Positions 12,852 to 41,608 of a stretch of 58,983 bases of DNA are shown in pieces. Source of the DNA: Chara braunii (Eukaryota; Plantae; Charophyceae). The position numbers and the translations under genes are program-made. The stretch lies in contig BFEA01000001.1 in NCBI GenBank assembly GCA_003427395.1, positions 10,214,654-10,273,636 of the forward strand, in the 5' to 3' direction. Each line of letters opens with the position of its first letter. Within the stretch, counting starts at the first letter, position 1. The notes under the pieces were generated by a model. It did no database searches. It was given only the letters and a program-made list of their open reading frames with translations, and was not told the origin of the DNA.

Positions 12852-12891
<40 letters not shown>

Positions 12892-13478
12892 NAAAAAAAA
12901 AAAAAAAAAAAAAATACACTGACTCCAGCTCAGCAGCAATGGCAGAGACATACTCAGAGTTGGCAACAATCTGCTTGTTTGGAGAGTAATAGACAGGTAT
13001 AGGCGGCAACAAGATGGGAAAGGCCAAAAAGAAGTGACAGCAAGTCAGGGGTTGCAGGAAGATAGAAATCATCTGACTCACAGGAAAGAACCCCACAGTC
13101 ACACAGTTTCACACGACATGTATACTCGCACACCATTGCACCGCGTCCCAAAGGGTGGGGGTACATGACTGGGAGGTGTGGTTGCCTGCACGAACAGGGG
13201 TCCAATATTGCATGATGTCACCACATTCTGAGTTTCTTGCTGGTTGAAAGGGGAGAAGCAAAGCACAACCTAGAATCTGTCCCCGATTTCTCCTAGCAGT
13301 ACACATGAAACTGGGGGATAACGCCATTTTTTATGCTTTCATCTAGGCAATCATCTTAGGCTGCACTATGGTTCTATCCGTCAAACTCTCATCTGGGCAG
13401 GCACGCACTGCAGCATGCTGCCGTTTAGATCATTTAAGTCCTGAGTCCGTTCAGTCAAGCAAACAATTACAATGTACA

Positions 13479-13525
13479 GGGATGCTCAACCGGCTTTCCA
13501 GCAGGTGCTGCTCCCCACCAATAGA
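13479..13525 (+). mobile_element. Isolated LINE 3'-tail motif (type A), probably from a short 5'-truncated insertion
   Basis: GGGATGCTCAACCGGCTTTCCAGCAGGTGCTGCTCCCCACCAATAGA matches the LINE-A tail at 12740-12786; A-rich run follows at ~13607-13640. Confidence 0.65.
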
Positions 13526-14787
13526 TGAAGCCTCCCCGTGAGTGCTAGCGGCGCCTGCCCCTATCAGCACCCCTAGCATCAGCCCGGGTTGTTCTCTCTC
13601 TCTCTCAAAAACAAAAACAAAAAACAGAAGAAGAAGAAGACCTCTAAGACCATTGTATTTGAGTTCACATTATTATTTGCTCAAACTCAAGAATTGGGGG
13701 TCAGAGCAAATGCGGTTGCCATGTGATGCTAGTTGGCGGTTCTGGGGCCGGTGGAGGCATGCTAAGAGCCCGCTGACCCACCTGGCAGTTGGATGAACGA
13801 ATGATGTGTCTTGTTTGGAAGAGCAGTGCGCCTGACAGCAGACTTGGTGCAGACATGCTATGCTGAGAAATTCGACAGAGCATCCATATTATGGGGAGAA
13901 CCGTATAAACTTCTCTCACATGAAACTAAGGAACGGGGCTAGGAAACCCCATAACATCCCGAAATTACTGGGGCCACTACCCAGATAAGGCCCCTGGAAA
14001 CCGGGTCCAGTGTCCCTTTGAACTGAAACAAAAGCTCTCCAAATATAAAAAAAGGTACCGCCCAGGCACTTGACAATATTGGACCAACCTTCTCCATGCT
14101 GTTAGATAGAATGCCAGAGTTTGAACCCATACACCCCCGGTCCCATTCTACGACAACCATCCAGCACCGATCCTAGCATCTCGAATAGCCCCGCCTCCCC
14201 CCAACCCACCCTCCCCCTTCCCCAACTCATACTCCCCTGCTCCCTATCTGCAACAACCATCCAACACCGATTCCAGGGGTCACTCCTACGGATCCCGAGT
14301 AGCCCCGCCTCCCCCCNNNNNNNNNNNNNNNNNNNNNNNNNNNNNNNNNNNNNNNNNNNNNNNNNNNNNNNNNNNNNNNNNNNNNNNNNNNNNNNNNNNN
14401 NNNNNNNNNNNNNNNNNNNNNNNNNNNNNNNNNNNNNNNNNNNNNNNNNNNNNNNNNNNNNNNNNNNNNNNCCCTCCCCGCCCCTCCTGCCTCATACCCA
14501 GCCTTCCCACCTCTCCCTTTCCCCGACCCCTTTCCACCTCGCCCTCTTCTCCTGCCCCCCCGCTCCCAATCCAAGGTGATCATTCCTGAGTAAGAACCCC
14601 CGATCCCGGGAGCGAATTTGCGATAGTAGAACAGGCGCACGTGTTGAAATCTGATACACCCTCACACAGAAGTGCAAAATGGCAAGTCTGAAAAACGAGG
14701 CAAGAAGAAGAAAAGGAAGAGGATGGCCACATACAATTTGGTATCAGGGAGCCATGGGTCACTATTTGACAGATTGGCGGCCCTGGC

Positions 14788-17700
14788 ATGGGAAGGAGAG
14801 GATGGAGGTGGGGACTGCGGAAGAGGCCTCCTCCTCCCAATCTCCCTCCACAGAACATACAGAAGGTCTGCTGTCTCAGTCCCCCCCCCTCTCCAGCGGA
14901 GCTACTAAAGGAGATGTACAGTGGCCAAACCTTGTCCGTCAAAAAGGGTCCCCCCCAGGGGCCTCCCCCTTCGTGGGCCGATAAAATCACGAAGATGTAC
15001 AGCGGCCAAACCTTGTCAGTCAAAAAGGACGGAGAAGGGGAGGGAGACCTGAAAATCCCATTGGATAACCTTTTTTTTTTTTTTTTTTTTTTCAAAAAAC
15101 GGGCCCTGTGCCCAAGGCTGATAGTGATATTTGAGAAAATTGAGGCCGGGGTCCTCACAGTCTACCCGGAGTAACCAGACAGAACATGCTGAGAACCAGG
15201 CCCAATGTCCCTCAGATGATGATGATGACGATGAGAATGAGAATGACAATAATGCTAAAGATAATGATGAGCAACTGGTTGGAGATAATTACTAAATACT
15301 AATCAAAGCTTCGACCTTCTTCCTCGCAGGCCAACCCAGAAGACAAAATAATCAGCCAGGGGGCCAAAAAACATAGGGTAAAAGCCCTCCCGAACGACAT
15401 GATTGAGGAAAGGGATGCGATATATATCTGCCATGCAAGCACTCGGGTTTTTTACGATAACACCGCCTACAAGTTAGCCAAGGATAAGGTAGGGTGGATT
15501 AGGAAGCGACTCGCAACTATGAAAGGATCAGAGGAGGGTGCCCGAGACTTCTTCCTAATCCAACCTATCTCGTCGACGGTGTTCACCGTAATCTGTATGT
15601 TCGACTCCGACAAGCGGATCATGGACACATGGCAGAGCATACCCTGCGGGCGTTCGGAGGTTCAAATTTTCCCTTGGTCCCCCCCAAAACAACAAAGGCC
15701 AGAGGACAAGCGGGACCAATTAATGACAGACCACTATTGGGTGGAGTTCCGTCATGTGCCCATAGAAATTCAAGGGGCTTTTGTACAAGAGCTCGCTCAA
15801 AAATACGAGATTGTCGATTTCATCGATCCCCTCCCTCTCTATGTGGCCCCAAGAGATGACTATCTCATGATTCTCTAGACTTGCCCAACGGTCACATTTT
15901 CATCACCGACGATGTGATCCTTTTTCGAGTGGGAGGGAGGGACTTCATAATCCACACAACACATAAAACAAGGCCTTGGTGTTTTAAATGCCAGGCATAC
16001 GGCCATCTCCCGTCAAAATCAGATTGTCCCCACCATCCGGCCAAAAGAATCAGATCTACAGGGCGCTTGTTACGCGATCCTTTCAAGGATACCTAGTGGA
16101 GAATTGTCGACGCAGGGCACGAATGATGGGTCTATATGGACGAACCCCGAGAAGGAGGAGGGGTAAGAGGGTGGGAGTGAGAGAAAGGTGAAGCAGTGAA
16201 TTGGAACACAAAACCACCAGACCAATGGATCCCCCCCAAGTCAGTGGAGGTACATATGGACGAGACCGTCAACCTCCCATACCTTCCCCCCTCCAAAAAA
16301 AAGGGTGCACCGACCCACAGTCAGCAGAACAGGACAGAAGCAGTTAGGAGTGAGCCCAGGCCTCAGGACTTCATTACTCTGACAGACATGGGAGAACTAT
16401 GACAATCCCCAACCCCGAAGAAAAAAACACATTCCAACAAGTCGTGTACAAAAGCAGACCTCAAATAAACGAATTACCCTTGGAAAACTGGACAACCGCT
16501 TTCAGGCCATATCAAGCACAACAAAAACAGGGGACGAACAGACATTCGAGCAACAGTCACTGGAAGTAGGACAGAATGAGCAAACATGAGGGGGGAGACT
16601 TGCTCAGCAAAGACAAAAGGAAGACAAGGGACAAGAAAGCTATGTGCAGAGGCTACAGGTCCTCGGTGGGTGTAACAACGAACGAACGGACAAGGTGGGA
16701 GAGGGAGGGAGAGGGGGAAAGGAAGGAGGCTTGATGGTACAAAGGGGAGAGAAACAACCAGCTCAGGGGAAAGGGGCTATGAACATAAGTACCCACCAGG
16801 CAGCCAGGCATCAGACCCTAGGGGAGACTGCAACATTGGAACCTCCTCAAGGGCCTCGGTCTCAGGCACCGGAAGACTCCCCCCCCCCCCCCCCCCCCGA
16901 CACGAGGGACAAAACGGACCCTTTCTTTCAAACTTTTGGTCCTCAACCCATGGATTGAGAATCGTCATCCGGCCCCCTAGAAGTAGAGATGACAGATAGT
17001 GTCCCTGAGGCCTGCGGGTTATAAGGAGAAGAGGATGTCGAGACTAAGTTAAGGAGCCTGGCAGAGTGGTTAATTGGCCAACTCCAGACACTATACACAA
17101 GCCAAACAGATTTATATTGGGGCGTATGTACAGTTGTTCTCTCTACTGGATGAGAGCCCCAGCCTGAAGCAGGCCTTGGGGCAAGGCCTGTCCCCAAAAA
17201 CTGATTGACAACAGATGCTGTGCAGAGTCTGGAACATTGTGCAAAAAAAATTCCAGCCCCCCGTAACGATAGGAACGCCAGACCCGTTCAAAAGATCAGT
17301 AAACCCGGGCCGCGCAGACAAGCCCCCCCCACACCCCCCTGACCAGTCGCCATAGAAAGGAGATACACAACAGGCCATGTACACCGAACTAACCGAGTTA
17401 ACTGAGCAGGGAGAGAGCGAGGTCCGAGAGGCAGCAAAGCAAATAGGGCCCTCAAAACGGGCAAAATTGCGCCACCTCATTGAGAATGGGTTATACCACA
17501 AAAACCCGTCGAAGGGGGATAAGGTACCGGTACTTCCGATCAGGAGGAGGGTCAGAAAATGGAAACTAGGTCTGTCACCCGCTGAGCCTGAGGACCCATA
17601 TACCCCTACCTATGGAGGAATGACGTTGCACGACTGGCATATGCAGAGGGAGGGGGCATTAAGGACCCATGAGGTCATATAATTCATTACAGACCACTAT

Positions 17701-18000
17701 GAACCAGGAGCCACAACCACCATTAGCGTGTCATCAGAGAACCTGAAGATGACATACAAGGATCTCTATGTGGGATTCAAAGATAATAAGGGGGTAGGTT
17801 TACAATGACCTACGCATGACATGCTTTTGGACACCCAACAACAGAAAATAAAGCTTAGTAGCATCTGGTCGACCGATGATCTACTCACATGTATATGCAC
17901 CATACTAAGAAAAAATATCCTCAACAAGGGGGTGGACTGGGAGACACAAGAATGGTCACAGTTACAAAACGGAGGATAGAGGGGGGGAGGGCAAAGGGAT
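14788..18000 (+). pseudogene. LINE-B ORF1 (zinc knuckle), fragmented
   Basis: PSWADKI; WVEFRHVPIEIQ...FIDPLPLYVAPRDDYL; RPWCFKCQAYGHLPSKSDC. Confidence 0.75.
15071..15185 (-). mobile_element. Short antisense LINE-tail (type B) retro-insertion inside LINE-B ORF1
   Basis: Poly(T) 15071-15092 plus the reverse complement of CCGGGTAGACTGTGAGGACCCCGGCCTC, which matches 36291-36319. Confidence 0.6.
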
Positions 18001-18077
18001 GCACAAACTGCAATGGACTGGGTAGAAGCTGTGTATGGAAAAAAAATAAAATTGGAAACACACCCTCCAACAAGCAG

Positions 18078-21000
18078 ACTTGGACATTAGATCGATTAAT
18101 GTAAATGGTCTAGCGTTCCGTACCCAGGAAAAAACTAAAGCGTTGTGGGACCTAATGCGGGGGGTTGGGGGAAGGACATGGTCGGACGTAGTTTGCGTTC
18201 AGGAAACCCACTTGATGGACACACCAAAACACTAAAGGGCACACAAGCAAGCTTGGCCCTTCCAAAGCTACCAAGCTTTTACGCCAACTCGGGGAGTGTT
18301 AGGGTGGCAATATGGATCCTGCCCGAATCACGACTAGAAGTACTCAGCTGGGAGAATAATAAAGAGGAGGAGTGATGGATTATGGTGCTGACCACATTGG
18401 AATTGAAAGTGGTGTGCATTGTTTTCCTATATGACCCCAACACAACCTATAGAGAATATTTTTTTTCGAAAAGATTGAAATGGTTTCCACCCCAGATATC
18501 CCGACAATCCTAGCGAGAGACTTCAATGGCGCACCAGATAGATGGCTGGACCGATGGAAAGTCCCCCCCACTACCACACACAATGCAGAGGAGGACGAGC
18601 GAATGCTAAGAGACTTGTGCGCCCCCCCTCTCATTATTCGACACTTTCAGGCGCAACTACCCGACCGAAAGAGCCTTTATCTGTATTCAAAACGACCCCG
18701 CCATACTATCTAAATCCCGAATCGATCTAATCTTGACCTCAGAAGAGTTGGGAGAGGGTTAACTATGTCGGCAATCCTGTCGACCAGCCCATACCCTGGC
18801 TTGGACCACAGGATGTGCATGGCAGTTTGGACCTTTCGCAAACGGCCGGATAATGGGGCTAGATACTATAACTCAATACCTCTCTGCTTCGATCGAGGTC
18901 CTTCCAGAAATACCTACAGCAGGCTTGGGACTTTTGGAAGGACTACCGCCCTCAACAAGACTCTCAAATTGCATGGTTTAATGACGAACTTTTCTTTATG
19001 CCCAAGAAGTGCAACAAATATTCCAAATATCTAGCTACATAACGACACCAACAAGAAATCACGATCATGCAAAACCTCGTGGACACAAAACAGCAGCAAA
19101 ACTCGCAAGGGCAGAAACAAAGGACCTATGCATTACAAACCCGCATACAGGACTTGAAGACCCAACTTTTGAAGCATGCACAGTATCGATGGCAGGGAGC
19201 CCAAACAAGGACCCGACTATCCAGGTCCTCAACTGAAGGAGCGGTGGATTCCCACTTCTTCAGCCTAGCCCGAACACGGATCAAAAGGACCACGATTGAG
19301 GTGCTTTATGAACCAGAAACCTGAAAATCGTCCCCAACGGTGACCACGGCGAGATGCACCAAGATAACATACGATTTCTACAACAACGAAAAAATTTCCT
19401 AGAATTAAATCATCATTCTATAGTAAAATTACAATCTAAGTTTCAAATTTTCATTCCATCTTAAAAAATGTCATTCCAATTTTAAAATTTTTCATCTTAC
19501 TTGCAAACTTTCATTCCAAGAATAGGGTATCCCTTCTTATTTGGACTGCATGCTAGAGATGGAATGAAAGTCTGGATGAGTTCATGAAATATTTTAATTG
19601 GATTGTCATTCTAAGTAAGGATTTTCAATCATAGATAGGTTAATCCAATCTAAATTAGAAGATATTTGTTGTAGTAGAATGAAAATTTAATTAAAACATT
19701 TCATAAACTCGTCCAGACTTTCATTCCATCTTGAACAAATCGATGTAGTTGGAAGGGAAAACTCATTTTTAGACGGGAACTTATCAAATAAAACTGGATT
19801 TTTTTTTTATTTTTTTTTTAATCAAATAAAACTGAAAATTTTAGAATTGGACGAACATTGGAATGATAATTTCTAAATATAAAGGATTTGTTTTTTATGG
19901 AATGTTTTTTCAACTTTCATTTCTCGTGGGAATTTTTATGTTGAAGTGTGGATAAGTCGGATGGGTCATACCACGATCGCCAAATAGCGGGATTTTTTAA
20001 ACCGGTAGACAAAACGCTGATACCCAAACAATGCGAATCCTTCGAGGCCCCACTCTCTAAGCAAGAGATATGGACCGCCCTCCTTAAATGAAGGAGGAGA
20101 AAACACCTGAGATTGATGGCCTCCCTAAGGAATTTTGAGAAACCACATGAGACTTTTTGGGCCAGGATGTCATGGACTTCTACAAAGAAGTATGGTACAC
20201 AGGTGAGATGAGAGAAAAAGTGAGGCAAGGGATGCTGACACTCCTATATAAAAAAGAGGATAAAATGGATATAAGAAATTACAGTCCAATTACACTCCTC
20301 ACGGTAGTGTACAAAATGTTGTTTAAAGCCTTAACAAATAGAATGATCCTGGTAATGGAAGATATCGTTCATCCTTCCCAAACCGGTTTCATGGAGAGTA
20401 GGAATATACAAGAGAATATCCTGTTAGTCCATGGATACTCCAGCTCACAAGACACTCCCATCAAAATGCGGCCTTGATTTTCATCGACTTCAAGAAAACC
20501 TACGACCATGTAGACTGACTGTTTCTCGACAGATGTTTGGAAAAAAATGAACTTTGAACCTGATTTTAGGCGATGGATACAAATCTTACACCAAAACGCA
20601 ACCACCTGCGTCCAAGTCAACGGATGCTTTGTGTCGCCCCTACGTTTGGAGCAGTTGGTCCACGAGGGGGACCCAATTGCCCCCTTCCTTTTTCTGGTCA
20701 TTATGGAAGCATTAGTTGCCAACCTCCAGATAAACAAAAACATTACTAGAATCCGATTCACACGCAGTCAGGAGGACGCAATTCCGGTGTGCTCCTTGTT
20801 TGCTGATAACCTCACGATAATGGCAGAAGCCACACATCAAAATATGGAGGAAGTACAAGAAATAATGAAAAGGTTTGTCAGGGTCTCCGACATGATGGTC
20901 AATTGGGGGAGCAAGACATAAGTATGGTGGATTTCACTATCAAGGGGGACACCCTCCAGAGTCACCCCACATTACATGGATGTCGTTAGAAACCCCAGTA

Positions 21001-22580
21001 AGAATCCTATGGGTATCTAGGACCACAGAGGGACGCCCACCAACTAATGACGAATGGATCAACGCCCCGACTAAAAAAAACTAAATAATTGGAAAAATAA
21101 GCATACATCCCTGTTTGGATGCGCAATGGTAGTCAATAACGCAATCTTTGCAACAATATGGTACAAGTCCCTATTCTGGCTATTGAGCAAAGGGAAACTG
21201 AGGAGGCTACGGAAAAAGGCAACGATTTTTCTATGGAGGGGGGATGGCGAGTAGAGCAATGTGATCAACCGAGTGACATGAAATTCAATTATCCAGCCCA
21301 AGGCAGGGGGAACCCTGTGAATAATCGACCCAGCCACGCAGATGCAAGCACTTCGATTAAAATGGATTAAAAACTTATTTTCGACCCCTAGAGCCTGTGG
21401 TACGTCTTAGCTCTAGAACACTTGGCCTGACTGTCCCCGGCAACCCCCCAAAGGATCCACCCGCTGGCATGGTTGGAAGACCGTTTCTGGACGGTCCCAC
21501 CCAAACTCCCACAAGGAAGGGTGGGGCTAGATGGCGGAGACCAGACAATGGACAACTTTTGGCCATTCCTACTGGAAACATGGCACAGACTTCCGCTCCC
21601 AAATAGAACCCACCCCGACCGTTGGGCGGAAGTCTACCGACAACCCCTGTTTGGAAATCGATGGGTGACATATCTGAGAGGCTGCATCATGATAAGCTCG
21701 TCCCTGCCCTGGAAGAGCAGAGTCAAATGAGGTGTCCTTAGGGTTGCGAATCTGTGGGACAACGAGAAACAGGACTGGATAACAAGAGATCAATTGTGGA
21801 AAACCCTACGGTACTGCCATCACATGGAGGGGTTTTTGAATAACCTAATTCAAGCCATACCACTGGCGTGATATCGAATTCTTAAACGGGGCCCCACCTT
21901 GAGAGAGGTGATTGGGTGGTAAATAGGGAGACTCCGCCGAGGATCGGCCAGATACATATGGTCTCACCCCAAATAGTCATGGTCGAGCACTACACTATCA
22001 CCAGAATGGGCGCCCTCCAAGGGAGCAGAGCTCCCTTTTATTGGAAAGAGAAAGCATCAGTATACCAAGTGAGAGTCATAGAGGAGAAGGGACAGAGGAT
22101 GGCATTCCAGCCATCCACACCGCTCCAGGATCTGGCTCTGGACCCAGTAGAATGGACATGGACCCCCCCCCCAAAAGAGGGAAGGCCCCTATGTTGGTCA
22201 CATCAGCCTGCATCAGTTGTCTGTCAAATCGGCCTATAAAATGCTCAGACCCAAACGATATCTGAGGGACACCGTTAACGATTGCTGGGATAGGCACCTT
22301 AATGTGGACCGCACTCTCCTGACACCAATCCATTGGTTCAGTGAACAAGAATCCAAACCCATGAAAATCACCTCCCTACAGTGGCAAATAGCTCATCATT
22401 GTTTGCCAACCAATGACTGGTTGACAGACCACAATAACCTAGAACAAAGAGGCCTGGTACTACCATGGTGCCAGTTGTGCCAGAGTTTATTCCCTTCCCA
22501 TAAGAAGGTGGAGACATTGAACACATTTTCATGCAATGCCTGATCGCCCAATTCACATGGAGATGGTGGGACCGCATATG
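18078..22580 (+). pseudogene. LINE-B ORF2: APE, RT and zf-RVT
   Basis: IRSINVNGL, VCVQETH, RDFNG, PGLDH, DIRNYSPITLL, HPSQTGF, VHEGDP, LFADN, WQIAHHCLPTN, WCQLC..VETL. Confidence 0.9.
19385..19948. mobile_element. AT-rich non-autonomous DNA-transposon-like insertion interrupting LINE-B ORF2 (possibly CACTA-derived); ends approximate
   Basis: Abrupt AT-rich block with repeated TTCATTCC/GGAATGA motifs; imperfect inverted ends caac..aaaaatttcc / gggaatttttatgttgaagtg; LINE coding resumes after ~19950. Confidence 0.55.
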
Positions 22581-23661
22581 AGAGGCGGTTAACGGACACC
22601 CTAATTTTCAGACAACTTGTCATGCCATTTATAACAAAATCCAAGGGTCATTTTAACCAAACTTGCCACCACGTCATAGAGCAGGGACCATAATTACTAA
22701 CTGCAAAAAAAAAACCTAAGAATAAAAGTAAAAAACCTATAAAACAGCATGGCAAAAGTGCACTTTCATGCAAATTTCGCCAACATTCAGTTTCAGAAAT
22801 CTTGAGAAATTTCAGAAATCTTAGCATGGGAAAATTGGAAAATTCCAATGCTCCAAATGAGACCAAATCTGGTACGCAACAACCTTGAACCAAAAGTGTG
22901 CCGAAGTATGGATAATAGGTTAGCATTCCGAGCATTCTGAGTCTTTCATGTATAATGGGACTTTGGACCCGGTCTCCTGCAGGTGTTGCTCCCCACCAAT
23001 AGAATGGATCCCTGTTAAAAAAGAAAGAAAACAACGAAAAAGGAAAAGAAAAGATGGACACGTTTATTCCTTCATACTAAGGCTGAGATTCAGGCTTGCA
23101 AGCAAAAAGGTAGTCACCACGGACTGGATGTTGTCCGTGCAATGAAGAATCTATGCACTTAAACCACCATAACATTTCCCAGCCATTTTCCTCAGACGTG
23201 CCTTGCATGTTGCTGCAACTTTTGGAGGTCGGCTGCCGGAGCAAAATGGCTGGTGGCACCAGCCAAAACGAGGCCTGCGCGGGTTCACTTTTTTTGGACG
23301 TGCAGGGCAAGTGGCTTGGAAGCACTGGCGATTTAAACCACCAGTAATTGGCCCAGCTATCGGTCGTGGAAAAAAAATAGAGTAGAAACATTTCTAGTCG
23401 GATGAATTTGGGCGCTCCTGTAGTGGCCCATACGTTTTCTAAAATCGTGGCTTGTTTACGGGTACGACTTTAGGAAGTACTGATGGTTTAAACCACCAGT
23501 ACCTTTCCCCGCTTGGGATCAGGGGCGCGACGGTTAACACAGAGGCCCAATTCGGCCTCCAGCGCTGACCACATCCATCGGCCGCACTTGCCCTGCAGGG
23601 CCCGCAGCCGATATACGAGAAAGGTACTGGCGGTTGAAGGCACCCACCCGAGCTTGGAGAG

Positions 23662-23726
23662 GCAGGGCTCTAAAGCACAGGCTGCCAGGAAAGGCAGGGC
23701 TCTGAAGCACAGGCTGTCAGGAAGGC
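23662..23726. repeat. ~31-bp tandem duplication
   Basis: gcagggctctRaagcacaggctgYcaggaa twice. Confidence 0.8.
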
Positions 23727-23782
23727 CCGCTCTCCAATGCTTGATAGATATGTTTCCTTAAAAAAAACAGCGATTCTTTGTA

Positions 23783-24100
23783 GGGAAAATTTGTCTAGCG
23801 CCCCTGTATTTTCCATTTATTTGCATCGCACCCCTCCGGCATGCAAAATACCCTGCCGCGCCCCTCTGACCAGTAGTGAAATGTTTCATGAACCCGTGGC
23901 GTCGTTCGGGCCTCACATCTTTTCTTAGTGCCCCTACCGGTACCCACAGTAACTTTGTGTCATGCCCCTACCGGATAGCCGTTGGGAAAATTTCCGATAT
24001 GCCCCTACCGGTACCGTCTATCTTTTTACAGTGCCCCTGTCGCCGTTGGAGAGACTCAGGGGAATTTCAACCCACCCTCCCATAGGCCGTCTGCCTGTCT

Positions 24101-24171
<71 letters not shown>

Positions 24172-24321
24172 ACACANNNNNNNNNNNNNNNNNNNNNNNN
24201 NNNNNNNNNNNNNNNNNNNNNNNNNNNNNNNNNNNNNNNNNNNNNNNNNNNNNNNNNNNNNNNNNNNNNNNNNNNNNNNNNNNNNNNNNNNNNNNNNNNN
24301 NNNNNNNNNNNNNNNNNNNNN

Positions 24322-24383
<62 letters not shown>

Positions 24384-24410
24384 TGACACATTCAAGTGTC
24401 GTCTGCCCTC

Positions 24411-24441
<31 letters not shown>

Positions 24442-24464
24442 GTGTGTGTGTGCGTGTCACACAA

Positions 24465-24509
<45 letters not shown>

Positions 24510-24891
24510 CATCGACGACGAGCAGGAACGAAGAAGGGGGGGGACACTCACCTTGCGAAAACGAAGACGACAGGAGGTTGGCCTTCAGGAGCGCGTCAAA
24601 AAAATGGTGGCGCGTCAACAAGAACACTGTTCGAAATTGAATTCAAATTTCCAGCGCTAAACTGCTGCAGGGCATCACAGGAAGATGGGTGCTCCTTACG
24701 AGGGCATATGGCACATAGCCCAATGGAATGGGACGGCCTGTTGAGGGAGGGCGTCATGGAAAGTTGCACCACTACCGACGGGGGCCTGCCAAAAAGATTT
24801 TCAGTCCCAGGGTTGCGGCAGGGTATTTCGCATGTCGGAGGGGCGCGACGCAAATAAATGGAAAATACAGGGGCGCCAGACAAATTTTCCC
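23783..24891. mobile_element. Non-autonomous Mutator-like element (MULE MITE) containing (CA)n/(CT)n repeats
   Basis: ~77-bp TIRs GGGAAAATTTGTCT.GCGCCCCTGTATTTTCCATTTATTTGC...; 9-bp TSD ttctttgta (23774-23782) / ttcttttta (24892-24900), 8/9 match. Confidence 0.88.
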
Positions 24892-25746
24892 TTCTTTTTA
24901 ATATCCATGTGATTAACCAAAGCATAGTGAACTTGACCGTGTAATAAGGATACATTCTTTTGATATTCTAAATAGGATACACTTTGAGGCGTTTTATGCC
25001 ACCACTTTATGTCCAGCAACTCGGTTGATGTGCTTTCCTTACGTGGATGGAGCGCTCCCTAGGGAATAGCTACTTGGATGTTTCAGTTCGCTTAGGGCCT
25101 CGTTCGACACTCCTCGGGGCCCGAAATTCCCCAAGGAAATGGTCGTTACACTCATCCTCGGGGAAGACGCGGAAAAAAAAAAGTGAAAACATTTCCTCGG
25201 GGATTCCTCGGGGCCACAGCCATTTTGACGATTTCTCTCGAGGTCCCTCGGAGGTCGAGCTTCCGGAAGAATCGGGGCGTCGACGGCAGCTCCTTTGATG
25301 ACATTTTTCAATTTCGTCTGGTCCATCGGTGGTCCTGCTGCGTCTCCACGGACATGTTGGGTCGGCAACGTTCGGCTTCACTCCAACGGTTACCGTTTGC
25401 GGCCAACCGGCATCCCCGACGTCCAGAAGGTACCGTCTTGCGTTGTCGCGTATGGCAATCCGCGGGAATGTCCCAACGGTCGGCAGATACGAATTTTTAA
25501 GGCCGCACTCCAGCTCCCAATTACGCACTGACCGTGGGAGACCGAAGACGTCCTTGGGGGTTTGTTGCGAAGTCGGGACGGCCGTTTGCAGCACTGCGCT
25601 CCACTGTTATGTTGGCGCCCGCGTTGTCTTCCGTTTGCTGCCATCGTCGTCGACTGTTTTATGGCTGACGTGTTCCGCAGGCTGCCGCTGCTGCTCCTTG
25701 TGGTTCTCTTCGACGCAAAACAAAGTCTTCGATGAAGGACGCCAGG

Positions 25747-27362
25747 ATGGAGGCACGACAGGCGATCCCCCGGTCCGGTGGGGAGCAGGTCGGAGGAAGG
25801 CGGTGCGGCGGGAGCCTGTCGACCGTTGGCAGGGCCTCCCAGCGGGTTGGGTGTGATGAATTGCCACCGCACTTGCAACCACTCCCTGGCTCATCGGACG
25901 AGGAGGAGGAGGTGGAGAGACGGCCACAAACCGTGTCGTTGGGCAGCGGATCAACGCAGGAGTGGTCAGCCACGGAGCTGTGCGGGACGGGCGGCGGCGT
26001 GTACGAGCAGTCGTTCACTGAACTCCTTCGGCCTGGCCTTGGCGAAGACGAAGGAGATGGCCGTGTCAACCTGTCGTTCGGTTTGTCCACCGGGCGGTCT
26101 ACAACTCCATCGCGCACAGTGCTCGTGCGACCCCACCCTGGCGACGAAGGCGGCCAATTGACAGTTGTTGATCGATCAGCGAGGACGAGGGCGTTGGCGA
26201 GTGAGACGGCGGGAGCGAACCGGAACTCGTCGACGGCCCAACCACGGGCGGCCTCTCTGTCCAAGGGCGCCCAGGGTCGGCCGGAGTGGATGCAGTTGCC
26301 ATCTCCCCTGTCTGTGGCGTCGGAAGTGGCACGAGGCCGTGGCGTCGGAGTCGACGGCGGGACCGACTTCTTGGATGCTGGTAATGGTCGCGACGGGAGG
26401 GAGGTGTGGAGGGACCTGCGGCGGGATCACCGGCTGCGGCGAGAGGAATACATCACACGGGGGGTGGAGCGTCTTCACGTGGGAGACCGGGAGAACGAGA
26501 ACGAGACGGACGATCCACCGGCGGAAGCAGACGATGACGACGACGACGAAGACAACGACGTAGAGTGTGGGGAAGGGGGGGGTGGTCACGCGTCGCCATC
26601 GTTGCAGACCGACATGGCTGGTAAGGGTGGGAAGTCCAAGCCTTCCGGCCGCAATGCTCGTTCGCGGGCGAAAAAAGGGCAGGGAAAGGGGAGCGGTGGC
26701 GAAGGCGATGGTGATGCGGAGGAGAAGCGCAACTTCTGGTCCGTGGAACACATTATAGCCCTCATAAGGGCTAAACGTGACCAAGATGCGCATATGCAGG
26801 GGATGGGGCACGCATACGCATGAATGAAACCGCGCGAATGGAAATGGCAAGACGTCGCCCAAAGGTTGAAGAACGTCGGCGTGTACAGGAATGCGGAGAA
26901 ATGCGGGAAGAAGTGGGACAATCTAATGCAGCAGTTCAAGAAAGTCCATCACTTTCAGTCACCATCAGGGGGTGCCGACTTTTTCCAGTTGACGTCGAAG
27001 GAGAGGGCGAGCAGGGGCTTCAATTTCACGATGGATCGCGCAGTTTATGACGAGATAGAGGGGTCGACTGGGATGAACCACACCATCCACCCGAGGAACG
27101 TGGTAGACACCGGTGCGTCTGGCGGCGTGCGCCCACCTTCGACGTCTTACATGGATCCTGACTCGGTGGCGGACGGGGAAGGTGTTGCAGGGCGAGAAGA
27201 CGACGAGGAGGGGTCGACGCGAGGCTCTTCGCAGATGACGGGCACCCCCGACGGTTCTGGGAAAAGGAAGAACACGAGGCAGCAGACTTTCGAGGCGCTG
27301 ACGGAATGCATGGAGAAACACGGGGAGCTGATGGCGTCGACGATGGAGAGTGCGAGCAAGCG
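25747..27362 (+). pseudogene. Harbinger Myb/SANT (trihelix-like) DNA-binding protein; one in-frame stop at 26821; 3' end lies in the gap
   Basis: FWSVEHIIALIRAK...WKWQDVAQRL...RNAEKCGKKWDNLMQQFKK. Confidence 0.88.
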
Positions 27363-35199: not shown

Positions 35200-36355
35200 T
35201 CCTTGCACACAGGATTCCAAACCAATCTCTTCTTATTGGAAGACCTGCAGGGGAGGGAGGGCGACTTTGTGAAATTATGGAATGTCTTACTCGCCCTCCC
35301 GGACCTCAAACAAGCTAGTTTATTGTGGATGCTCTTGCTGTTGGTTACCCCCTCAGCGGTATGGCTCTGTAGCAGAGGTATGGAAGCCCCCTTGAAGTGT
35401 TCCAGATGCTCCTGGCCCTTCGAGTCAACCAAGCACCTATGGTGGGATTGCCCGGCGTCAAGGAGAGTCTGGAGATGGTGGGAAGAACACTGGGAAAGTC
35501 TGGGAGGGGAGGGGATCGCTTGGGACGAAAAATGGGTACTGGGCTTTGTGGGGAATGAGCAAACAGGGAGAAAAGGATGGCCGTATGTGGCCCATGTGGC
35601 CAGGGCGGTTATCTGTTCGGTCATTTGGGCAGACAGAAACCGCTCCAGATTCGAGGGGCGCCCTTTTTCTGACGCTGAAACTAAAGCAGACATCAAGAGA
35701 GGCCTATGCGCAGCCATTTGGGCCGACTGGCGTAGGAAAGCCAAATGCGGAAGGGGCCCAAGGAGACAACTCTGGTGGTTTCTGTGATCCTGGGCAAAAG
35801 GCAATCAGTTGGCCGGGGTGCATACCTCACGGGGACTGGTGATCTCGAAGTGGCTGAGCTCTTGATAGTTAGATGGAGGTAGTTGGTAGAGGGGGGGGTT
35901 AAGTTGCCGTATAGGTGGACCAGGGTCCCTCGGTCAGTAAGGAGGAGGTTAGAGAGGGCCAGAGACTTAACCAGGGTACTCCGTTGGTAGGGATGCAGTG
36001 GTCCTTTAGGAGAGCCCCAGGGATGGGGGAATAGTATGTTCCACCTGGCCGCTTAGGCCTGGCCGTCGCTTTAGACGCCAAGTTGTAGAAAGAATAATGA
36101 GGTTCAATTGATTAAGTACTCTAGCAGGGTGGAGCTGAATAGTTTCTGAAAGGGGAGGTTGGCTAGAATTCAGATCTGTTTACGTATTTGAATATAGACG
36201 ATTGAAGATATTGAAGTTTGATTACTGCAGATTGTGTTCCTGGTTCGGTTGGGACCGTAAGCTAAACTGGCTGATGCTGCCAGGATAACTCTGGGTCGAA
36301 TTGTGAGGTCCCCGGCCTCAACGATTAATTGGTTCGAAATATAATAAGCTCATTT

Positions 36356-36390
<35 letters not shown>
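35200..36390 (+). mobile_element. 5'-truncated L1/Tx1 LINE (LINE-C): zf-RVT, 3' UTR with type B tail, poly(A)
   Basis: LKCSRCSWPFESTKHLWWDCPASRRVWRWW...VIWADRNRSRFEG; poly(A) ~36359-36390. Confidence 0.85.
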
Positions 36391-36391
<1 letters not shown>

Positions 36392-36417
36392 AATGTCTTT
36401 TTTTTTTTCTTTTTTTT

Positions 36418-36462
36418 TTTCTCGATTTATGCATGTCATCCTTGCGCAGGGGCCACGCTAAT
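36418..36462 (-). ncRNA. U6: U6 snRNA fragment, 3' part (pseudogene), followed by poly(A)
   Basis: Minus strand ATTAGCGTGGCCCCTGCGCAAGGATGACATGCATAAATCGAGAAA; 2 mismatches to plant-type U6 as recalled. Confidence 0.93.
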
Positions 36463-38446
36463 ATGGATAGGGACGGCCATCCTCTCGATTTATGTGTTTT
36501 GAATCTGTTTGTTTGGCTGTTTACCTTTGATTAAGATGGCTGGCAATATGGATAGGGACGGCTGCTTTCATTGTGGCTCTTTGAATCACTGGATGCGAGA
36601 ATGCCCTCGTAGGGTTTCGAGCTTTCGCCCTCCTGTTATGGGCGCTAATGCGGTACCGACAGGACCTCCAATATTGACCCTGCCTCCTCATGCTCATTCG
36701 GCCCCGGCGCCGCCGGCTAATATTGCTCCCTCTTATGGTCTGTCTTCGTCCTCCAATTTCAGATCCGGCAACAACACGGGCTCTGGGAGTGGCCAACAAC
36801 CTCAACAGGCTCGCCCGAATTGGTGGGCTCGTAATCAAGAAAGGCTTGATAAAGTGTATGGTAAGTATGTCGAAGACACCGAACGAGAAGCTAAGAGGAA
36901 GGAGGAGGAAGCCAGAGATAAGGCTAAAAAGGAAGAAGAGGAGAGATTGTTGGCATGGAAAATTGAACGGGAGAAGTTTGAAGCAGCAATGGGAGAACGA
37001 TTGGAAAAAAGGCTGGACGCCTGAGCGATTATGAAAGGCAAGTCGGTTGATGTGAGTGGGGGGGATGTTGTTAATGAGGAGGCGCAGAGGTTGCGCAAGG
37101 AGAATGACGATCTGAAACGTAAATTAAGTGAGGTGTTGTGCCTGGCTGGGGAAGACCGGGTTTTATATCTACAGAATGAGGTCATGGAACTGCGTCGGAA
37201 GGTTGGTGACAAGCAAGTCAACGAGGATGTGATTACTTCCTTGAAGACCGAGATTAGCGAGCTTAAGCAGTCGGCATTTATGAAGATCAATTTTGAACAG
37301 GAGATCGCAGGGTTGAGAAAGGAGGTGAGCGTACTACGTGATCAGAATGAGCGTGTGGTTTCGGAGGCTGGGCAATGGAGAGAGCAAGCCTTGCGGCCAG
37401 GGAATAAGTGGGGAAGTGTGGTGTTGCAGACACCGGAAGTCACAAATCGTGGATCGCCGAAACCACATTGGACGGATAATGTACGGGAAGGGGAGAAATG
37501 GAAGGCTGAATATCGCAACCTGCAGAGCCTTCATCGTTTGGCTAATATCGAAGCAGAGGCGCTCAAGGAGAAGCGGGCTGAGGCTGAAGCCCGGAGGATG
37601 GAGGCGGAAAAGCAGGTTAAGGTGCTGGAGGAGGAGATGAGGAAGCTGATGGCAAGCGGGGAGAGGGGTAACGAAGGAAATATTGGGGGCACGAATCTTA
37701 AAGAGCGACTTGAAGAGGCGGCGCTTCGGTCGGCTCGGAAGGGAGTCAAAGCGACGCCAGGGAGAATGGGTGTTAGGGCCGCGTCGTCGTCAGCACGGCC
37801 TGAGAAGGAGCTTACTCCGAAGCAGGTCGCTACCTCGGTCAATGACCGTACGGAGTTTACCGAGGAACAGAAGCGGCAGCTGCGTATGCTTCGCAAAGCA
37901 GGGTTGGAGCCCATGTGTAAAGAGGAAGGTGTGAAGCTCGGTAAGTTCGAGGATACTGTTTGCGATCTGGCTGAAGCTCGTGCTCGAAAAGCCTTTGGGG
38001 GCGTTGCAGGCCCATCTAAAGGGACTAGCAGCATTCAAGAGGTAAGCGACGATGCTTCGAAGAGCTCCGGCGATGCCGAGGAAGACGAGGGAAAGTCGGT
38101 GGAGCTATAGGAACCTTTCCCGAACGCGTCCTCGCTTTGGTCTTTTGCTGATGAGTGCCGACGAAGTAGGTGCGAAGTAGGGACTTCGGCGGTTGACATC
38201 CACTCTCTCTGTTCTAAGTCTCCTTCTCCTCAAGATTGCTCTTCTTTCTTTCTTCGGGATGCTGAGTACAATGGTTTCTTTAGGCTGGTGGTGATGGGGC
38301 TTATCGCTTTGTCAATGGTCGTCATGAAGGTGTGTTTAGGCCTTATGGCCGGGATGAAGGACTGATATAGGCTATGTGCCGGGATGGTCTGCTCCATGAT
38401 TGGTTGTGACTAATGGATGTTTTTGCGAGTATCTCACACTCTCACA
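36463..38446 (+). mobile_element. ~2 kb retroelement-like insertion within U6, 9-bp TSD
   Basis: Flanked by cacgctaat (36454-36462) and catgctaat (38447-38455); removing it and one TSD copy restores contiguous U6. Confidence 0.85.
36536..38110 (+). pseudogene. Gag/ORF1-like protein: N-terminal CCHC knuckle and long coiled coil (~524 aa; one in-frame TGA at 37022)
   Basis: GCFHCGSLNHWMREC; ORFs 36509..37024 and 37031..38110 are in the same frame; E/K/R-rich heptads. Confidence 0.8.
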
Positions 38447-38473
38447 CATGCTAATCTTCTCTGTATCGTTCCA
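38447..38473 (-). ncRNA. U6: U6 snRNA fragment, upstream part (ACAGAGA box and AGC triad)
   Basis: Minus strand TGGAACGATACAGAGAAGATTAGCATG matches the conserved U6 core at all 27 positions. Confidence 0.93.
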
Positions 38474-38690
38474 TTTTTTTTTATTTTTTATTTTTTATTA
38501 TTTTTTTTTTTTGGTGGAAAGTTGTCCTTTATATTTCATAAAAATGGAACGAGGCCGGGGACCTCACAATTCAACCCGGAGTTATCCTGGCAGCCTCAGC
38601 CAGTTTCGCTTACGAGCCAAGCTCGAAGACCCACCTACTGCTCTTGAAATATCAATTCTACTGCTGGAAACCGGGTCCAGCGTCCCATTA
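38474..38690 (-). mobile_element. LINE 3' tail (type B, preceded by half of a type A motif) with poly(A) abutting U6
   Basis: Reverse complement of 36256-36319; T-rich run 38474-38512; GGGACGCTGGACCCGGTTTCCAGCAG at ~38660-38686. Confidence 0.75.
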
Positions 38691-38941
38691 CTTTAACCAC
38701 TAACTTTCCAAAATTAAATCTTGAAGCGCTTTGCAAAAAGGGACTGCCTTAGCAGCCATGCTTTCCTGAACGTAAGAAATTACAATCAAGTTCATGTCAA
38801 CTATAAGAGATTGGCGCAACGGCCCTGTGTGGCTTTGCTACTCAATATGCGATCTTTAGGCTCAGCCTCCACTCTGTTCTACATCCTATCTTTGTTTCCA
38901 ACTGTAACTCAAACAAAGAAGGACTTCCTCTCTCTCTCCAT

Positions 38942-38992
<51 letters not shown>

Positions 38993-39329
38993 TGTTTAAT
39001 TGTCCCTCCCCTGCCCGACATTCTAGATGTATAGAGCCGTGGTAAAGTCCCGGTGCATTCAATCTTTGAACCAGTATAAATGTATCTGGCGCATAGGCAA
39101 TGCCAGATACATTCAGACAGCTTCAAATCTCGAATGGGGGCCTCTCTCTCTCACACACTTTTTTTTTTTGTGCCCACACACTGATAACGAATGTATACAA
39201 GCCATCTTTCCGTTGCGCGCTATATGTCCGCAACGGGAAAGATAGCATGTCTACATTCGTTACCAGTGTACAGAGAGCGCACGCCTGGGCAAAAAAGCAA
39301 TATATATATCTATATATATATATATATAT

Positions 39330-39388
<59 letters not shown>

Positions 39389-40419
39389 AGGTAAGTCTCC
39401 AGCCTCGAGGCTGGCCTCATGCGACGTCCATCGATTGGATGAGCAAAATCGAATGAACTACNNNNNNNNNNNNNNNNNNNNNNNNNNNNNNNNNNNNNNN
39501 NNNNNNNNNNNNNNNNNNNNNNNNNNNNNNNNNNNNNNNNNNNNNNNNNNNNNNNNNNNNNNNNNNNNNNNNNNNNNNNNNNNNNNNNNNNNNNNNNNNN
39601 NNNNNNNNNNNNNNNNNNNNNNNNNNNNNNNNNNNNNNNNNNNNNNNNNNNNNNNNNNNNNNNNNNNNNNNNNNNNNNNNNNNNNNNNNNNNNNNNNNNN
39701 NNNNNNNNNNNNNNNNNNNNNNNNNNNNNNNNNNNNNNNNNNNNNNNNNNNNNNNNNNNNNNNNNNNNNNNNNNNNNNNNNNNNNNNNNNNNNNNNNNNN
39801 NNNNNNNNNNNNNNNNNNNNNNNNNNNNNNNNNNNNNNNNNNNNNNNNNNNNNNNNNNNNNNNNNNNNNNNNNNNNNNNNNNNNNNNNNNNNNNNNNNNN
39901 NNNNNNNNNNNNNNNNNNNNNNNNNNNNNNNNNNNNNNNNNNNNNNNNNNNNNNNNNNNNNNNNNNNNNNNNNNNNNNNNNNNNNNNNNNNNNNNNNNNN
40001 NNNNNNNNNNNNNNNNNNNNNNNNNNNNNNNNNNNNNNNNNNNNNNNNNNNNNNNNNNNNNNNNNNNNNNNNNNNNNNNNNNNNNNNNCAAGCACACACG
40101 ACAGGAGGACGACAGGCAGAGGGGCATGGAAGATGGGAGTGAAGGTCGGAGGCGGCACGCGACAAACTATCTCCCACAAGGTGGATTGCAGCAGGGAGGG
40201 TCGCGTGGATTGCAGCATTTTTTTTNGCGGCGGCGCCAAACACGCATGTTTGAATTGGAACTGGTCGCGCCTCCCGGCTGAAGGGCATCTCACAAAGATG
40301 CATCCCTGGCAGGAGGGCAGAGCAGACATCCAACACCGAAATGGGACCAGCGATCCGGTAAGGGCGTCCCCGAAAGTTGCGCCGCTCGCTGACGGGGGCC
40401 TACGGGAAACTTCAGAGGC

Positions 40420-40505: not shown

Positions 40506-41112
40506 AAAAAAAGAAGAAGAAAAACAAAAAACTAGCAGAAGATTGTTAGGGCGACCCAAAAAAGAGAAAAAAAAGAAAAAGAAAAATGGAAAAACGGCCA
40601 ACCCTGCAACCCTCCCAGACCCCCGTTTTTCTTTCCTTCTTCATTTCGGACATTTTGGATTTCCCAAAGGAGAAATGCCGGGGGCCGGCCACAAACAACG
40701 CCGCACGACCTCTGCAGACTACCGCTGGTCATTCCCTTTTTGCCTCTGCTAGGACCACCCGAACGACCAATCCGTCCTATGACAATGACCGCACCCTCTG
40801 CGCCTATCTAAAACCTTGAAAGAGTCGTCTACATTACCCGATCCGGAAACTCGGTGCGCGCCAAAAACGCAATCGGGTATAGCGCAGCCTCCTGGCTGCG
40901 AACTTCGTCAAACATAGCACATGACTTCACAGACGCTCCATGGTGGGGAGCAGCGTCTGCCACGAAATCAGTGTCCAGGTGCAATAAAAAATGATACAAC
41001 TTACGAGCATACACATAGCCTACGGGCACATACTATGTATCGTCAAAAAGAGCTGCCCGGTAAACTGTAGGCAGAGAGGGAGAAAAGGACAACAAACTAG
41101 GGGCTGTGACAA

Positions 41113-41163
41113 ACTGTTTCGTCGGTGTTTCATCGACTCACAGGAGGCTGAACCCTCAACGGT
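41113..41163 (-). ncRNA. Type III hammerhead ribozyme, degenerate copy A
   Basis: ACCGT-T-GAGG-GTTCAG-CCTC-CTG(-)TGA-GTCGATG-AAA-CACCGAC-GAA-ACAGT. Confidence 0.8.
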
Positions 41164-41608
41164 CTGCAGAATCCCATAACTGATTACACTGTAAGTGATA
41201 ATCCACCTTAACCCCAACTGTGGTTAAGTATCAACGACTGCCCGACAACTGATACCCTGAGGTAGGCACCAACCACTGCCATCAAGGTACCTGTGATGCA
41301 AACCAAAGCAGACTATCACTCACCCACGCCAGATGGAAAACTCCACAGACTGTCGGTTCACACCCCATCACAAGCCAGCAAAACACCCACGAAACAAAGA
41401 AAGGTCTGTCACAGCCAAAAAATACACTCCAGACACACCGTTGGCACTAGAGGGACAGCATGGCCGCCCCGACCACTGCCGCTCGATCTGACCAGAGAAA
41501 ATTGTAGCAGGGTGCTAGCGAAGTCATGGTAAATATCGTCAAAAAAAAATACCCCGTAAACTGTAGGCAGAGAGGGAGAAGAGCACACCAAACGAGGGGC
41601 TGTGACAA

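Follow-up and report, generated by a model that had tools for sequence, protein, structure and literature searches.

A 1,984-bp insert that splits a U6-like sequence at its AGC-triad region in the Chara braunii genome is most probably a dead, non-autonomous Penelope-like element (PLE) of the Chlamys clade, which landed there once and by chance. The sequence it entered is a U6 retropseudogene, and the hit on the AGC triad is probably incidental. This PLE type is already published for C. braunii (PMC8557442). The stretch analyzed—the window—comprises 58,983 nt of the forward strand of contig BFEA01000001.1 (assembly GCA_003427395.1; positions 10,214,654–10,273,636). Coordinates are positions within the window, except where they follow the handle of a locus that carries a relative of the insert (L002, L003, and so on).

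On the minus strand, sequence reading shows a U6-like core interrupted by the insert at 36463–38446. The Rfam U6 model (RF00026) matches this strand on either side: 36404–36464 with 35.2 bits (E 2.8e-6; model 48–105) and 38447–38484 with 26.4 bits (E 1.3e-3; model ~22–56). Both scores are under the gathering score of 44, and at gathering the U6 model gave zero matches anywhere in the window. When the insert and one copy of the flanking repeat are excised, the two pieces fuse into a single colinear U6 core. The repeat is a 9-bp duplication (left copy 36454–36462, right copy 38447–38455) that falls at about model 48–56 in the Rfam alignment. An earlier sequence-only reading had described a U6 core broken by an insert with a 9-bp target-site duplication; the split and the 9-bp repeat stand, but the repeat is imperfect, with one mismatch (C/T).

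The interrupted sequence lacks the U6 5′ stem-loop (model 1–21), which is also not found upstream of the 5′ portion, and an A11GA10 run substitutes for its 3′ end, as seen in the Rfam alignment and by sequence reading. Because the stem-loop is missing and the A-run stands in place of the 3′ end, the U6-like sequence is a ~70-nt, 5′-truncated, A-tailed retropseudogene and no gene. All its parts lie on the minus strand: the 5′ portion at 38447–38473 (~model 28–56, with the right duplication copy; 26.4 bits), the 3′ portion at 36420–36462 (~model 48–92, with the left copy; 35.2 bits), and the A11GA10 tail at 36397–36419. A functional U6 gene is ruled out by the absent stem-loop, the A-tailed 3′ end, and the sub-gathering Rfam scores of both pieces. 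A U6 intron acquired through reverse splicing is also ruled out: with the 9-bp repeat placed in each of its 10 possible registers, no GT…AG boundaries that restore U6 arise, and the ORF of the insert is antisense.

A LINE 3′ end flanks the retropseudogene on each side, with its A-tail facing inward. The left arm (36256–36390, plus strand) is a 3′-end fragment of an APE/RT LINE family with an A36 tail; the right arm (38474–38614, minus strand) is likewise a LINE 3′-end fragment, and its A-rich tail directly adjoins the U6 piece. The left arm forms an inverted repeat with 38485–38614 (94% over a 64-nt core, 79% over 135 nt). The right arm matches a LINE 3′ end at L002 9578–9725, and the ORFs of that LINE match Exo_endo_phos_2 and RVT_1. 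The presumed target, a conserved multicopy U6 gene, is in fact a dead U6 retrocopy between LINE 3′ ends.

The insert carries a gag-like ORF, ORF1 (36536–38110), on the plus strand and hence antisense to U6. ORF1 comprises a CCHC knuckle, a low-complexity linker, long helices of predicted coiled-coil type, and a small C-terminal helical domain. Residues 9–24 match zf-CCHC (Pfam PF00098; E 1.3e-5, above cut-off). For a 359-aa part of ORF1, AlphaFold predicts helices at residues 65–120 and 148–208 (56 and 61 residues, pLDDT >90), whose length fits a coiled coil, and a three-helix domain at residues 273–322. A homologue search returned 33 proteins, all from C. braunii. The frame is broken by an in-frame TGA at 37022–37024, where the closest relative, L002, has TTA. 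Sequence reading, Pfam, and AlphaFold thus bear out the 1,984-bp length, the ORF antisense to U6, and the CCHC/coiled-coil content given by the sequence-only reading. Its ~524-aa gag-like protein holds as a gag-like CCHC ORF, but the reading frame is interrupted. Its statement that the insert has no TIR, LTR, poly(A), or RT also agrees with our sequence reading and repeat search, which found none of the four.

Alignment to L002 identifies the insert as an internally deleted copy of a Chlamys-type PLE. Insert positions 36770–38309 correspond to L002 9740–11279, and 38305–38448 to L002 16260–16404, each at 92% identity. Between these two segments L002 carries about 5 kb of ORF2 (GIY-YIG, CxC, RT). 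The deletion junction lies at 38305–38309 on the plus strand, where L002 11279 is joined to 16260 at a 2-nt “cg” microhomology. Downstream of it, a conserved 142-nt 3′ terminal segment (38305–38446, plus strand; 92% to the L002 3′ end) runs to a CA-rich end, ...CTCACACTCTCACA, and homologous 3′ ends are present in L003, L005, L007, and L008. The earlier description of the insert as a non-autonomous retroelement is therefore upheld: of a ~7-kb element, nothing but ORF1 and the 3′ end is left.

The relatives, about 7 kb at full length, encode ORF1 and an ORF2 in which an N-terminal GIY-YIG nuclease is combined with a CxC motif and an RT. In L002–L008, ORF1 precedes ORF2. Longer copies, to which the sequence-only reading had looked for the type of RT and endonuclease, show the endonuclease: L002, L007, and L008 encode GIY-YIG upstream of the CxC and RT motifs. 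The Pfam GIY-YIG matches (PF01541) are all just sub-gathering (L002 11318–11593, E 4e-4; L007, 2.5e-3; L008, 9e-3), and the motifs GIY...YVG..R..H..E..N are readable in them. A CxC triplet (CKC, CNC, or CSC) occupies the equivalent position in L002, L003, L005, L007, and L008 and is followed by a conserved GHVSFRL. RT motifs lie on the same strand downstream of GIY-YIG, in the region deleted from the window copy; ..FD[IV]KEM.., GIPMGKPSS, and LIDDV are readable, with no Pfam RVT_1 match. Atlas look-alikes of the RT piece (0.92–0.98) belong to eukaryotic, largely animal clusters, some with RVT_1 and HTH_animal, and their taxa, where recorded, are Cnidaria, Rotifera, and Arthropoda. The arrangement of the copies also supports PLE identity, since the three head-to-tail tandem units of L005, the pseudo-LTR of L003, and the 5′ truncation of L002 are PLE hallmarks. 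The 3′ region is found upstream of ORF1 in L003, L004, and L007.

These relatives bear directly on the sequence-only reading, which had proposed that the insert belongs, as a non-autonomous copy, to a family specific to U6 and had likened it to the site-specific non-LTR elements R2, Utopia, and Keno; on such a model it would use an RLE or APE. A split conserved U6 motif, a target-site duplication, and a gag-like ORF1 agree with that proposal. The longer relatives, however, have GIY-YIG, CxC, and RT in the PLE-type arrangement, with no APE or RLE, and they form tandems and pseudo-LTRs; none of the five other copies lies in U6, and the target is a pseudogene. Kinship with non-LTR elements is therefore not borne out, and we hold this proposal to be extremely improbable. 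R2 (28S) and Utopia/Keno (U2 snRNA) do resemble the present case in that a conserved small-RNA-derived sequence is interrupted with a short duplication, but they use an RLE or APE and one recurrent site in functional multicopy genes (PMC4640811), whereas the window family has GIY-YIG and unrelated flanks. Also unlike these elements, the insert has no LINE poly(A) tail and its relatives occur as tandems and pseudo-LTRs.

The published C. braunii elements give a closer match. For the Chlamys type of this species, Craig et al. 2021 report an upstream zf-CCHC ORF, genome-wide spread, tails, and internal-deletion copies (PMC8557442). Compared by description, the family resembles the Chlamys-2_cBra type in its C. 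braunii host and its ORF2 with N-terminal GIY-YIG, CxC, and RT; in its upstream gag-like zf-CCHC ORF; in pseudo-LTRs or tandems, 5′ truncation, end tails, and genome-wide distribution; and in internal-deletion derivatives that retain the 3′ end (PMC8557442). It differs from that type in that the copies examined show no canonical 3′ hammerhead and the window copy, a defective one, has ORF1 alone. No hammerhead was found at window positions 35500–39500 at E ≤ 10; in L002, L003, and L005 at gathering; or in L002 15500–16700 (E ≤ 1) and L003 9000–15700 (E ≤ 5), and a strict pattern scan of the examined copies was likewise negative. A (CA)n/(C)n microsatellite target, common but not universal in the clade, occurs at none of the six 3′ junctions; there is no more than a 2-nt CA overlap at the 3′ junction, in the window and in L002. 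Loss of coding sequence with retention of the 3′ end shared with autonomous elements is also seen in Chlamydomonas reinhardtii, in MRC1 and in the internally deleted, transcribed Chlamys-3_cRei (PMC8557442). Those derivatives often form pseudo-LTRs and multicopy tandems, whereas the copy in the window stands alone and has a clear 9-bp duplication. Its boundaries—the duplication, the CA overlap at the 3′ junction, and a 5′ junction composed of a 15-nt internal and a 12-nt target copy (described below)—are unusually clean for a PLE.

The sequence-only reading named no equivalent family for U6, but Dada-U6 DNA transposons target U6 (Kojima & Jurka 2013, PMC3706591). Like the insert, they show overlapping U6 fragments on both sides and no TIRs, and the fish elements are antisense to U6 (PMC3706591). 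A captured CCHC gene fragment inside a Dada-U6-like element, or inside a Mutator-like element that lacks TIRs and duplicates 9 bp of target, could account for the duplication, the lack of TIRs, and the gene antisense to U6. Against this, no DDE transposase is present, both insert halves are colinear with the PLE in L002, and the sites differ: Dada-U6, which does have a DDE transposase, duplicates 6 bp (GCGCAA) at U6 65–70 and recurs in true U6 arrays of animal hosts (PMC3706591), whereas here 9 bp are duplicated at ~model 48–56. We give a DNA transposon almost no credence. Helitron, MULE, and Dada as such were ruled out by wrong termini, the lack of a transposase, and the colinearity of both halves with the PLE.

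The flanks of other copies show how the family as a whole inserts. In five of them—L002 (92% identical, the closest), L003, L005, L007, and L008—the 3′ flank is unrelated, non-U6 DNA; with the window, this makes six sampled 3′ junctions of a family whose copies are probably far more numerous. A search of 177 kb (the window plus the relative loci) found no further U6 3′ half. The family probably inserts genome-wide, and the hit on the AGC-triad region is probably incidental. The claim of a U6-specific family finds no support at either end of the element, with none of five other 3′ junctions in U6 and a U6-antisense 12-mer of the window copy (described below) in none of eight other 5′ ends. Unrelated flanks and 5′ ends free of U6 sequence, the pattern that the sequence-only reading had set against its own proposal, are what the sampled copies show (five flanks and eight 5′ ends). 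That proposal was not absurd: PLE-X of Selaginella targets 28S rDNA at a precise site, without GIY-YIG (PMC8557442), and Chlamys-related PLEs can thus evolve strict RNA-gene targeting. Such site recurrence is not seen in the window PLE family, which has GIY-YIG.

A second U6-antisense piece in the 5′ end of the insert, noted earlier at 36484–36497, is confirmed. The 12-mer at 36483–36494 is identical to the U6-antisense target at 36420–36431, 32–43 nt upstream of the insertion point, and no run of 12 was reached in 20,000 shuffles (p < 5e-5). It is one part of a composite junction. The insert begins with a 15-nt tail (36463–36477, plus strand) that copies ORF1 codons 5–9 (36548–36562) exactly; a repeat search extends the identity to an 18-nt direct repeat (36460–36477 and 36545–36562, 18/18), and the tail overlaps the target through an AAT microhomology. 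PLE insertions commonly bear 30–40-bp tails (PMC8557442). There follows a rearranged 5′ terminus (36478–36494, plus strand), which comparison with eight other copies resolves into CATCCT, the native family start, and then the 12-mer.

The 5′ ends of those eight copies begin (T)CATCCT[G/T/C]ACGATTTGGAACC... and share a ~55-nt block, GGAACCACCGTAG..., that is conserved in 8/8 and missing from the window copy. Where they have T[G/T/C]ACGATTT, the window has TCTCGATTT, matching the target. The 12-mer occurs in none of the eight, and the similarity of the family 5′ termini to U6 is within chance in shuffles (p 0.06 to 1); the Rfam U6 model at E ≤ 5 gave no match in L003 9000–15700. Target-derived 5′ sequence, which had been proposed as a family feature, is thus not shared by these eight copies. 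For the window/L002 subfamily the 5′ end is known from the window copy alone, L002 being 5′-truncated. When another complete 5′ end of this subfamily was sought with N-terminal ORF1, the search returned P0027 only, from a divergent copy; an ORF2 query for a full copy of the subfamily gave no matches, nor did short-word BLAST of 36464–36540 against all relative loci fetched. Since the 12-mer is absent from eight 5′ ends and lies in a copy-specific rearranged 5′ UTR, we read it as the template-switch footprint of one integration, along a path that we infer to have needed at least two or three switches.

The 12-mer could instead be native. Under this alternative, the window/L002 subfamily has a U6-antisense-like 5′ end, and annealing of the cDNA 3′ end to matching target DNA aids full-length insertion in abundant Chara U6-derived sequences. 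The 12-nt identity between 5′ end and target is highly non-random (p < 5e-5), and CATCCT and CGATTT of the family 5′ terminus are both found in the U6-antisense target as well. Yet the 3′ flank of L002, the closest relative, is not U6, four more copies likewise lie in non-U6 DNA, and the family 5′ termini are not significantly U6-like. The actual join, moreover, did not use the 12-nt homology, and the window copy lacks the block kept in 8/8 others, which points to a copy-specific rearrangement. We consider homology-assisted homing to U6 unlikely; if true, it would be the first case of an snRNA-directed Penelope-like element and a counterpart of R2-style 5′ joining.

A one-off PLE insertion could have proceeded as follows. 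Earlier, LINE machinery would have inserted the ~70-nt U6 retropseudogene where two LINE 3′ ends carry A/T-rich tails. The element would have lost about 5 kb of ORF2 through internal deletion, retaining ORF1 and the 142-nt 3′ end, which is what non-autonomous PLEs typically keep, and the window copy would have needed ORF2 protein in trans. In a single landing inside the retropseudogene, a GIY-YIG nuclease may have placed nicks 9 bp apart, and the bottom-strand end, with its terminal TG, may have primed on the CA-rich RNA 3′ end. At the 5′ end, the polymerase may have switched templates via short microhomologies, copying a 12-nt stretch from the top strand of the target close by and another of 15 nt from within ORF1 before a final join at the AAT microhomology. 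Such a course of events would leave the 5′ junction as a patchwork and 9 bp of target duplicated.

LINE reverse transcriptases produce U6 chimeras, and switching is visible at the 5′ junction, so the U6 pieces might themselves have been added to the element ends by template switching onto U6 snRNA. The pieces, however, are colinear, with an overlap of exactly 9 bp, which is what staggered nicking of a sequence already in place predicts; U6 is also antisense on both sides, whereas switching predicts sense U6 at the 5′ end only. A chimeric retrocopy is therefore very unlikely.

The U6 sequence is a dead retrocopy, the PLE type is known, and other copies lie in unrelated DNA, which together suggest an ordinary insertion by chance: the element, of a published transposon type, is a degenerate copy that happens to sit in a U6 retrocopy and appears to reveal no U6-targeting retroelement. 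With its clean boundaries and a 5′ junction of 15-nt internal and 12-nt target copies, the solo copy offers a readable natural record of 5′-end resolution in PLEs, which are poorly understood elements. A further point of interest is the strongly conserved ~55-nt block at the family 5′ end.

The U6-like core on the minus strand reads as two interrupted pieces (reading of 36200–38700). Both match Rfam U6 (RF00026): piece 1 at 36404–36464 (minus; 35.2 bits, E 2.8e-6, model 48–105) and piece 2 at 38447–38484 (minus; 26.4 bits, E 1.3e-3, model ~22–56). Both fall below the gathering score of 44, which no U6 match anywhere in the window reaches. The pieces overlap in a 9-bp repeat (36454–36462 and 38447–38455, with one C/T difference), and 1,984 bp lie between the repeat copies (36463–38446). 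Sequence reading and Rfam matches agree on this split core, repeat, and insert as the sequence-only reading had described them, and the second U6-antisense piece that it placed at the insert's 5′ end is present as an exact 12-mer (36483–36494, identical to 36420–36431). An exact 18-nt direct repeat also occurs, at 36460–36477 and 36545–36562.

The interrupted U6 is not a gene: The 5′ stem-loop (model 1–21) is missing, A11GA10 stands in place of the 3′ end, and the U6 is enclosed by inverted arms (36256–36390 and 38485–38614; 94% over 64 nt, 79% over 135 nt) whose A-rich tails are both directed at the U6 piece. The right arm resembles the 3′ end (9578–9725) of a LINE in L002, another C. braunii locus, that encodes Exo_endo_phos_2 and RVT_1 and has a long poly(A) at its end. 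The U6 piece is most simply read as a 5′-truncated, polyadenylated U6 retropseudogene pasted by LINE machinery into LINE A/T tails, as the established target preference of LINEs would suggest.

The insert matches L002 in two segments, each at 92%: 36770–38309 to L002 9740–11279, and 38305–38448 to L002 16260–16404. The window copy thus derives from a longer element by internal deletion, and its deletion junction at 38305–38309 shows a "cg" microhomology. The ~5 kb that it lacks can be read in L002 and, more diverged, at L003, L005, L007, and L008. It encodes a GIY-YIG nuclease (three copies match in Pfam, at E 4e-4, 2.5e-3, and 9e-3), a CxC motif conserved in all five loci, and RT motifs whose look-alikes in the Atlas are eukaryotic, largely animal clusters, some with RVT_1. 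L005 holds three head-to-tail units and L003 a pseudo-LTR; the L002 copy is 5′-truncated. This combination—GIY-YIG, CxC, and RT, tandems, and a pseudo-LTR—is that of Chlamys-clade Penelope-like elements (PLEs). The L005 units (9377–25831), each ~5.4 kb long and disrupted by frameshifts or stops, form a textbook PLE tandem array, and in L002 the poly(A) of an APE/RT LINE, 60 nt long, directly adjoins the truncated PLE copy (9578–9746/9740).

Membership in the non-LTR class, as initially proposed, is ruled out by the family's nuclease, which is GIY-YIG and not APE or RLE. Dada-U6, known U6-targeting DNA transposons, was also rejected as the insert's identity: These encode a DDE transposase and leave a 6-bp GCGCAA duplication at U6 65–70 (PMC3706591), whereas the repeat here is 9 bp. 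A canonical 3′ hammerhead belongs to the C. braunii type of Craig et al. (2021, PMC8557442); Rfam and a pattern scan found none in the copies examined (window copy region, L002, L003, and L005), and the insert is therefore of the same kind but not necessarily the same family. A subthreshold Hammerhead_3 match at 41111–41165 (minus; 30.2 bits vs. gathering 48.5, E 3.8e-4) carries a deletion in its CUGAUGA box, and no sequence link was found between it and the PLE copy at 36463–38446.

Targeting of U6 by this family is not supported. Recurrent U6 flanks, expected under that proposal, did not appear: All five other 3′ junctions compared (L002, the 92% relative; L003; the last L005 unit; L007; and L008) pass from the conserved 3′ end straight into different sequence, none of it U6, the six junctions including the window's being a sample from a large family. 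No further U6 3′-half occurs in 177 kb of window and loci. Because Chlamys copy number in C. braunii is very high (Craig et al., PMC8557442), occasional chance insertions into U6-derived DNA are expected. PLE-X of Selaginella, which is Chlamys-related, targets 28S rDNA (PMC8557442), which means that PLEs can in principle target RNA genes; the family here gives no sign of it. What sits in the U6 retropseudogene is one defective copy belonging to a known type of retroelement.

The 12-nt identity with the target at the 5′ junction is not chance (reached in 0/20,000 shuffles). Eight other family 5′ ends start (T)CATCCT[G/T/C]ACGATTTGGAACCACCGTAGCAAT... and continue into a conserved ~55-nt block. 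The window copy starts with the same CATCCT, then CT (as in the target) vs. the family's xA; it is without the entire block, and family sequence resumes ~40 nt before the ATG. An alternative is that its subfamily natively carries a U6-antisense 5′ end; no second close copy with a full 5′ end was found among the loci searched, L002 being truncated there. As a family feature, a U6-derived 5′ end fails on the eight differing starts, which share at most 6–7 nt with the U6 piece (P 0.06–0.2) or nothing. The junction is informative and probably event-specific. A polymerase template switch onto the nearby target top strand during a single integration, via the short microhomologies CGATTT and TATG, would account for the 12-nt patch as well as for the UTR deletion; 15 nt copied from ORF1 codons 5–9 as a false start may then have been joined to the top-strand nick via AAT. 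This proposed path agrees with the described PLE "tail" phenomenon (PMC8557442).

ORF1 is a single long frame (36536–38110, plus) that includes a CCHC knuckle (zf-CCHC in Pfam, E 1.3e-5) and is interrupted by an in-frame TGA at 37022–37024. The AlphaFold model of its 359-aa C-terminal part, built with 17 homologues, has two long helices (56 and 61 residues, pLDDT >90) and, toward the C-terminus, a small domain of three helices; the prediction fits a coiled-coil, gag-like protein. All homologues of this part (33/33) are C. braunii proteins, the closest ORF1 homologue being P0002 in L002 (88% aa). Between the window copy and L002, 8.4% of ORF1 bases differ, most of all at third codon positions (18/26/47), and L002 reads TTA at the TGA position; hence the frame was at one time intact and under selection.

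The ~55-nt noncoding block at the PLE unit 5′ end (…TTGGAACCACCGTAGCAAT…GTGTGACTCG…) lies within L003 9851–9930, L004 9143–9222, L006 9418–9497, L007 9683–9762, L008 9748–9827, and L005 9228–9307, 14897–14976, and 20396–20475. It is conserved far more than the surrounding UTR, across subfamilies with ORF1s only ~50–70% identical; RNAalifold folds it into two small hairpins that show hardly any covariation, and Rfam gives no match. It may serve as a promoter, packaging signal, or RT recognition site. The 3′ end of the L003 copy is followed by 11 unrelated nucleotides and then, at L003 15487–15560, by a degraded version of this family's 5′ terminus (…GATCCTGCGTTTTTGG…), which resembles either a PLE "tail" or what is left of a further tandem unit downstream. 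A U2 snRNA match in L003 (6954–7075, minus; 76.3 bits) exceeds the Rfam gathering score but spans only 122 nt; it is probably a further snRNA retrocopy, truncated and lying in TE-rich DNA. Short near-perfect hairpins at 39178–39269 and 39056–39136 (34–35-nt arms, 88% and 80% complementary) have weak plant-miRNA-family Rfam matches, far below gathering, and look MITE- or foldback-like.
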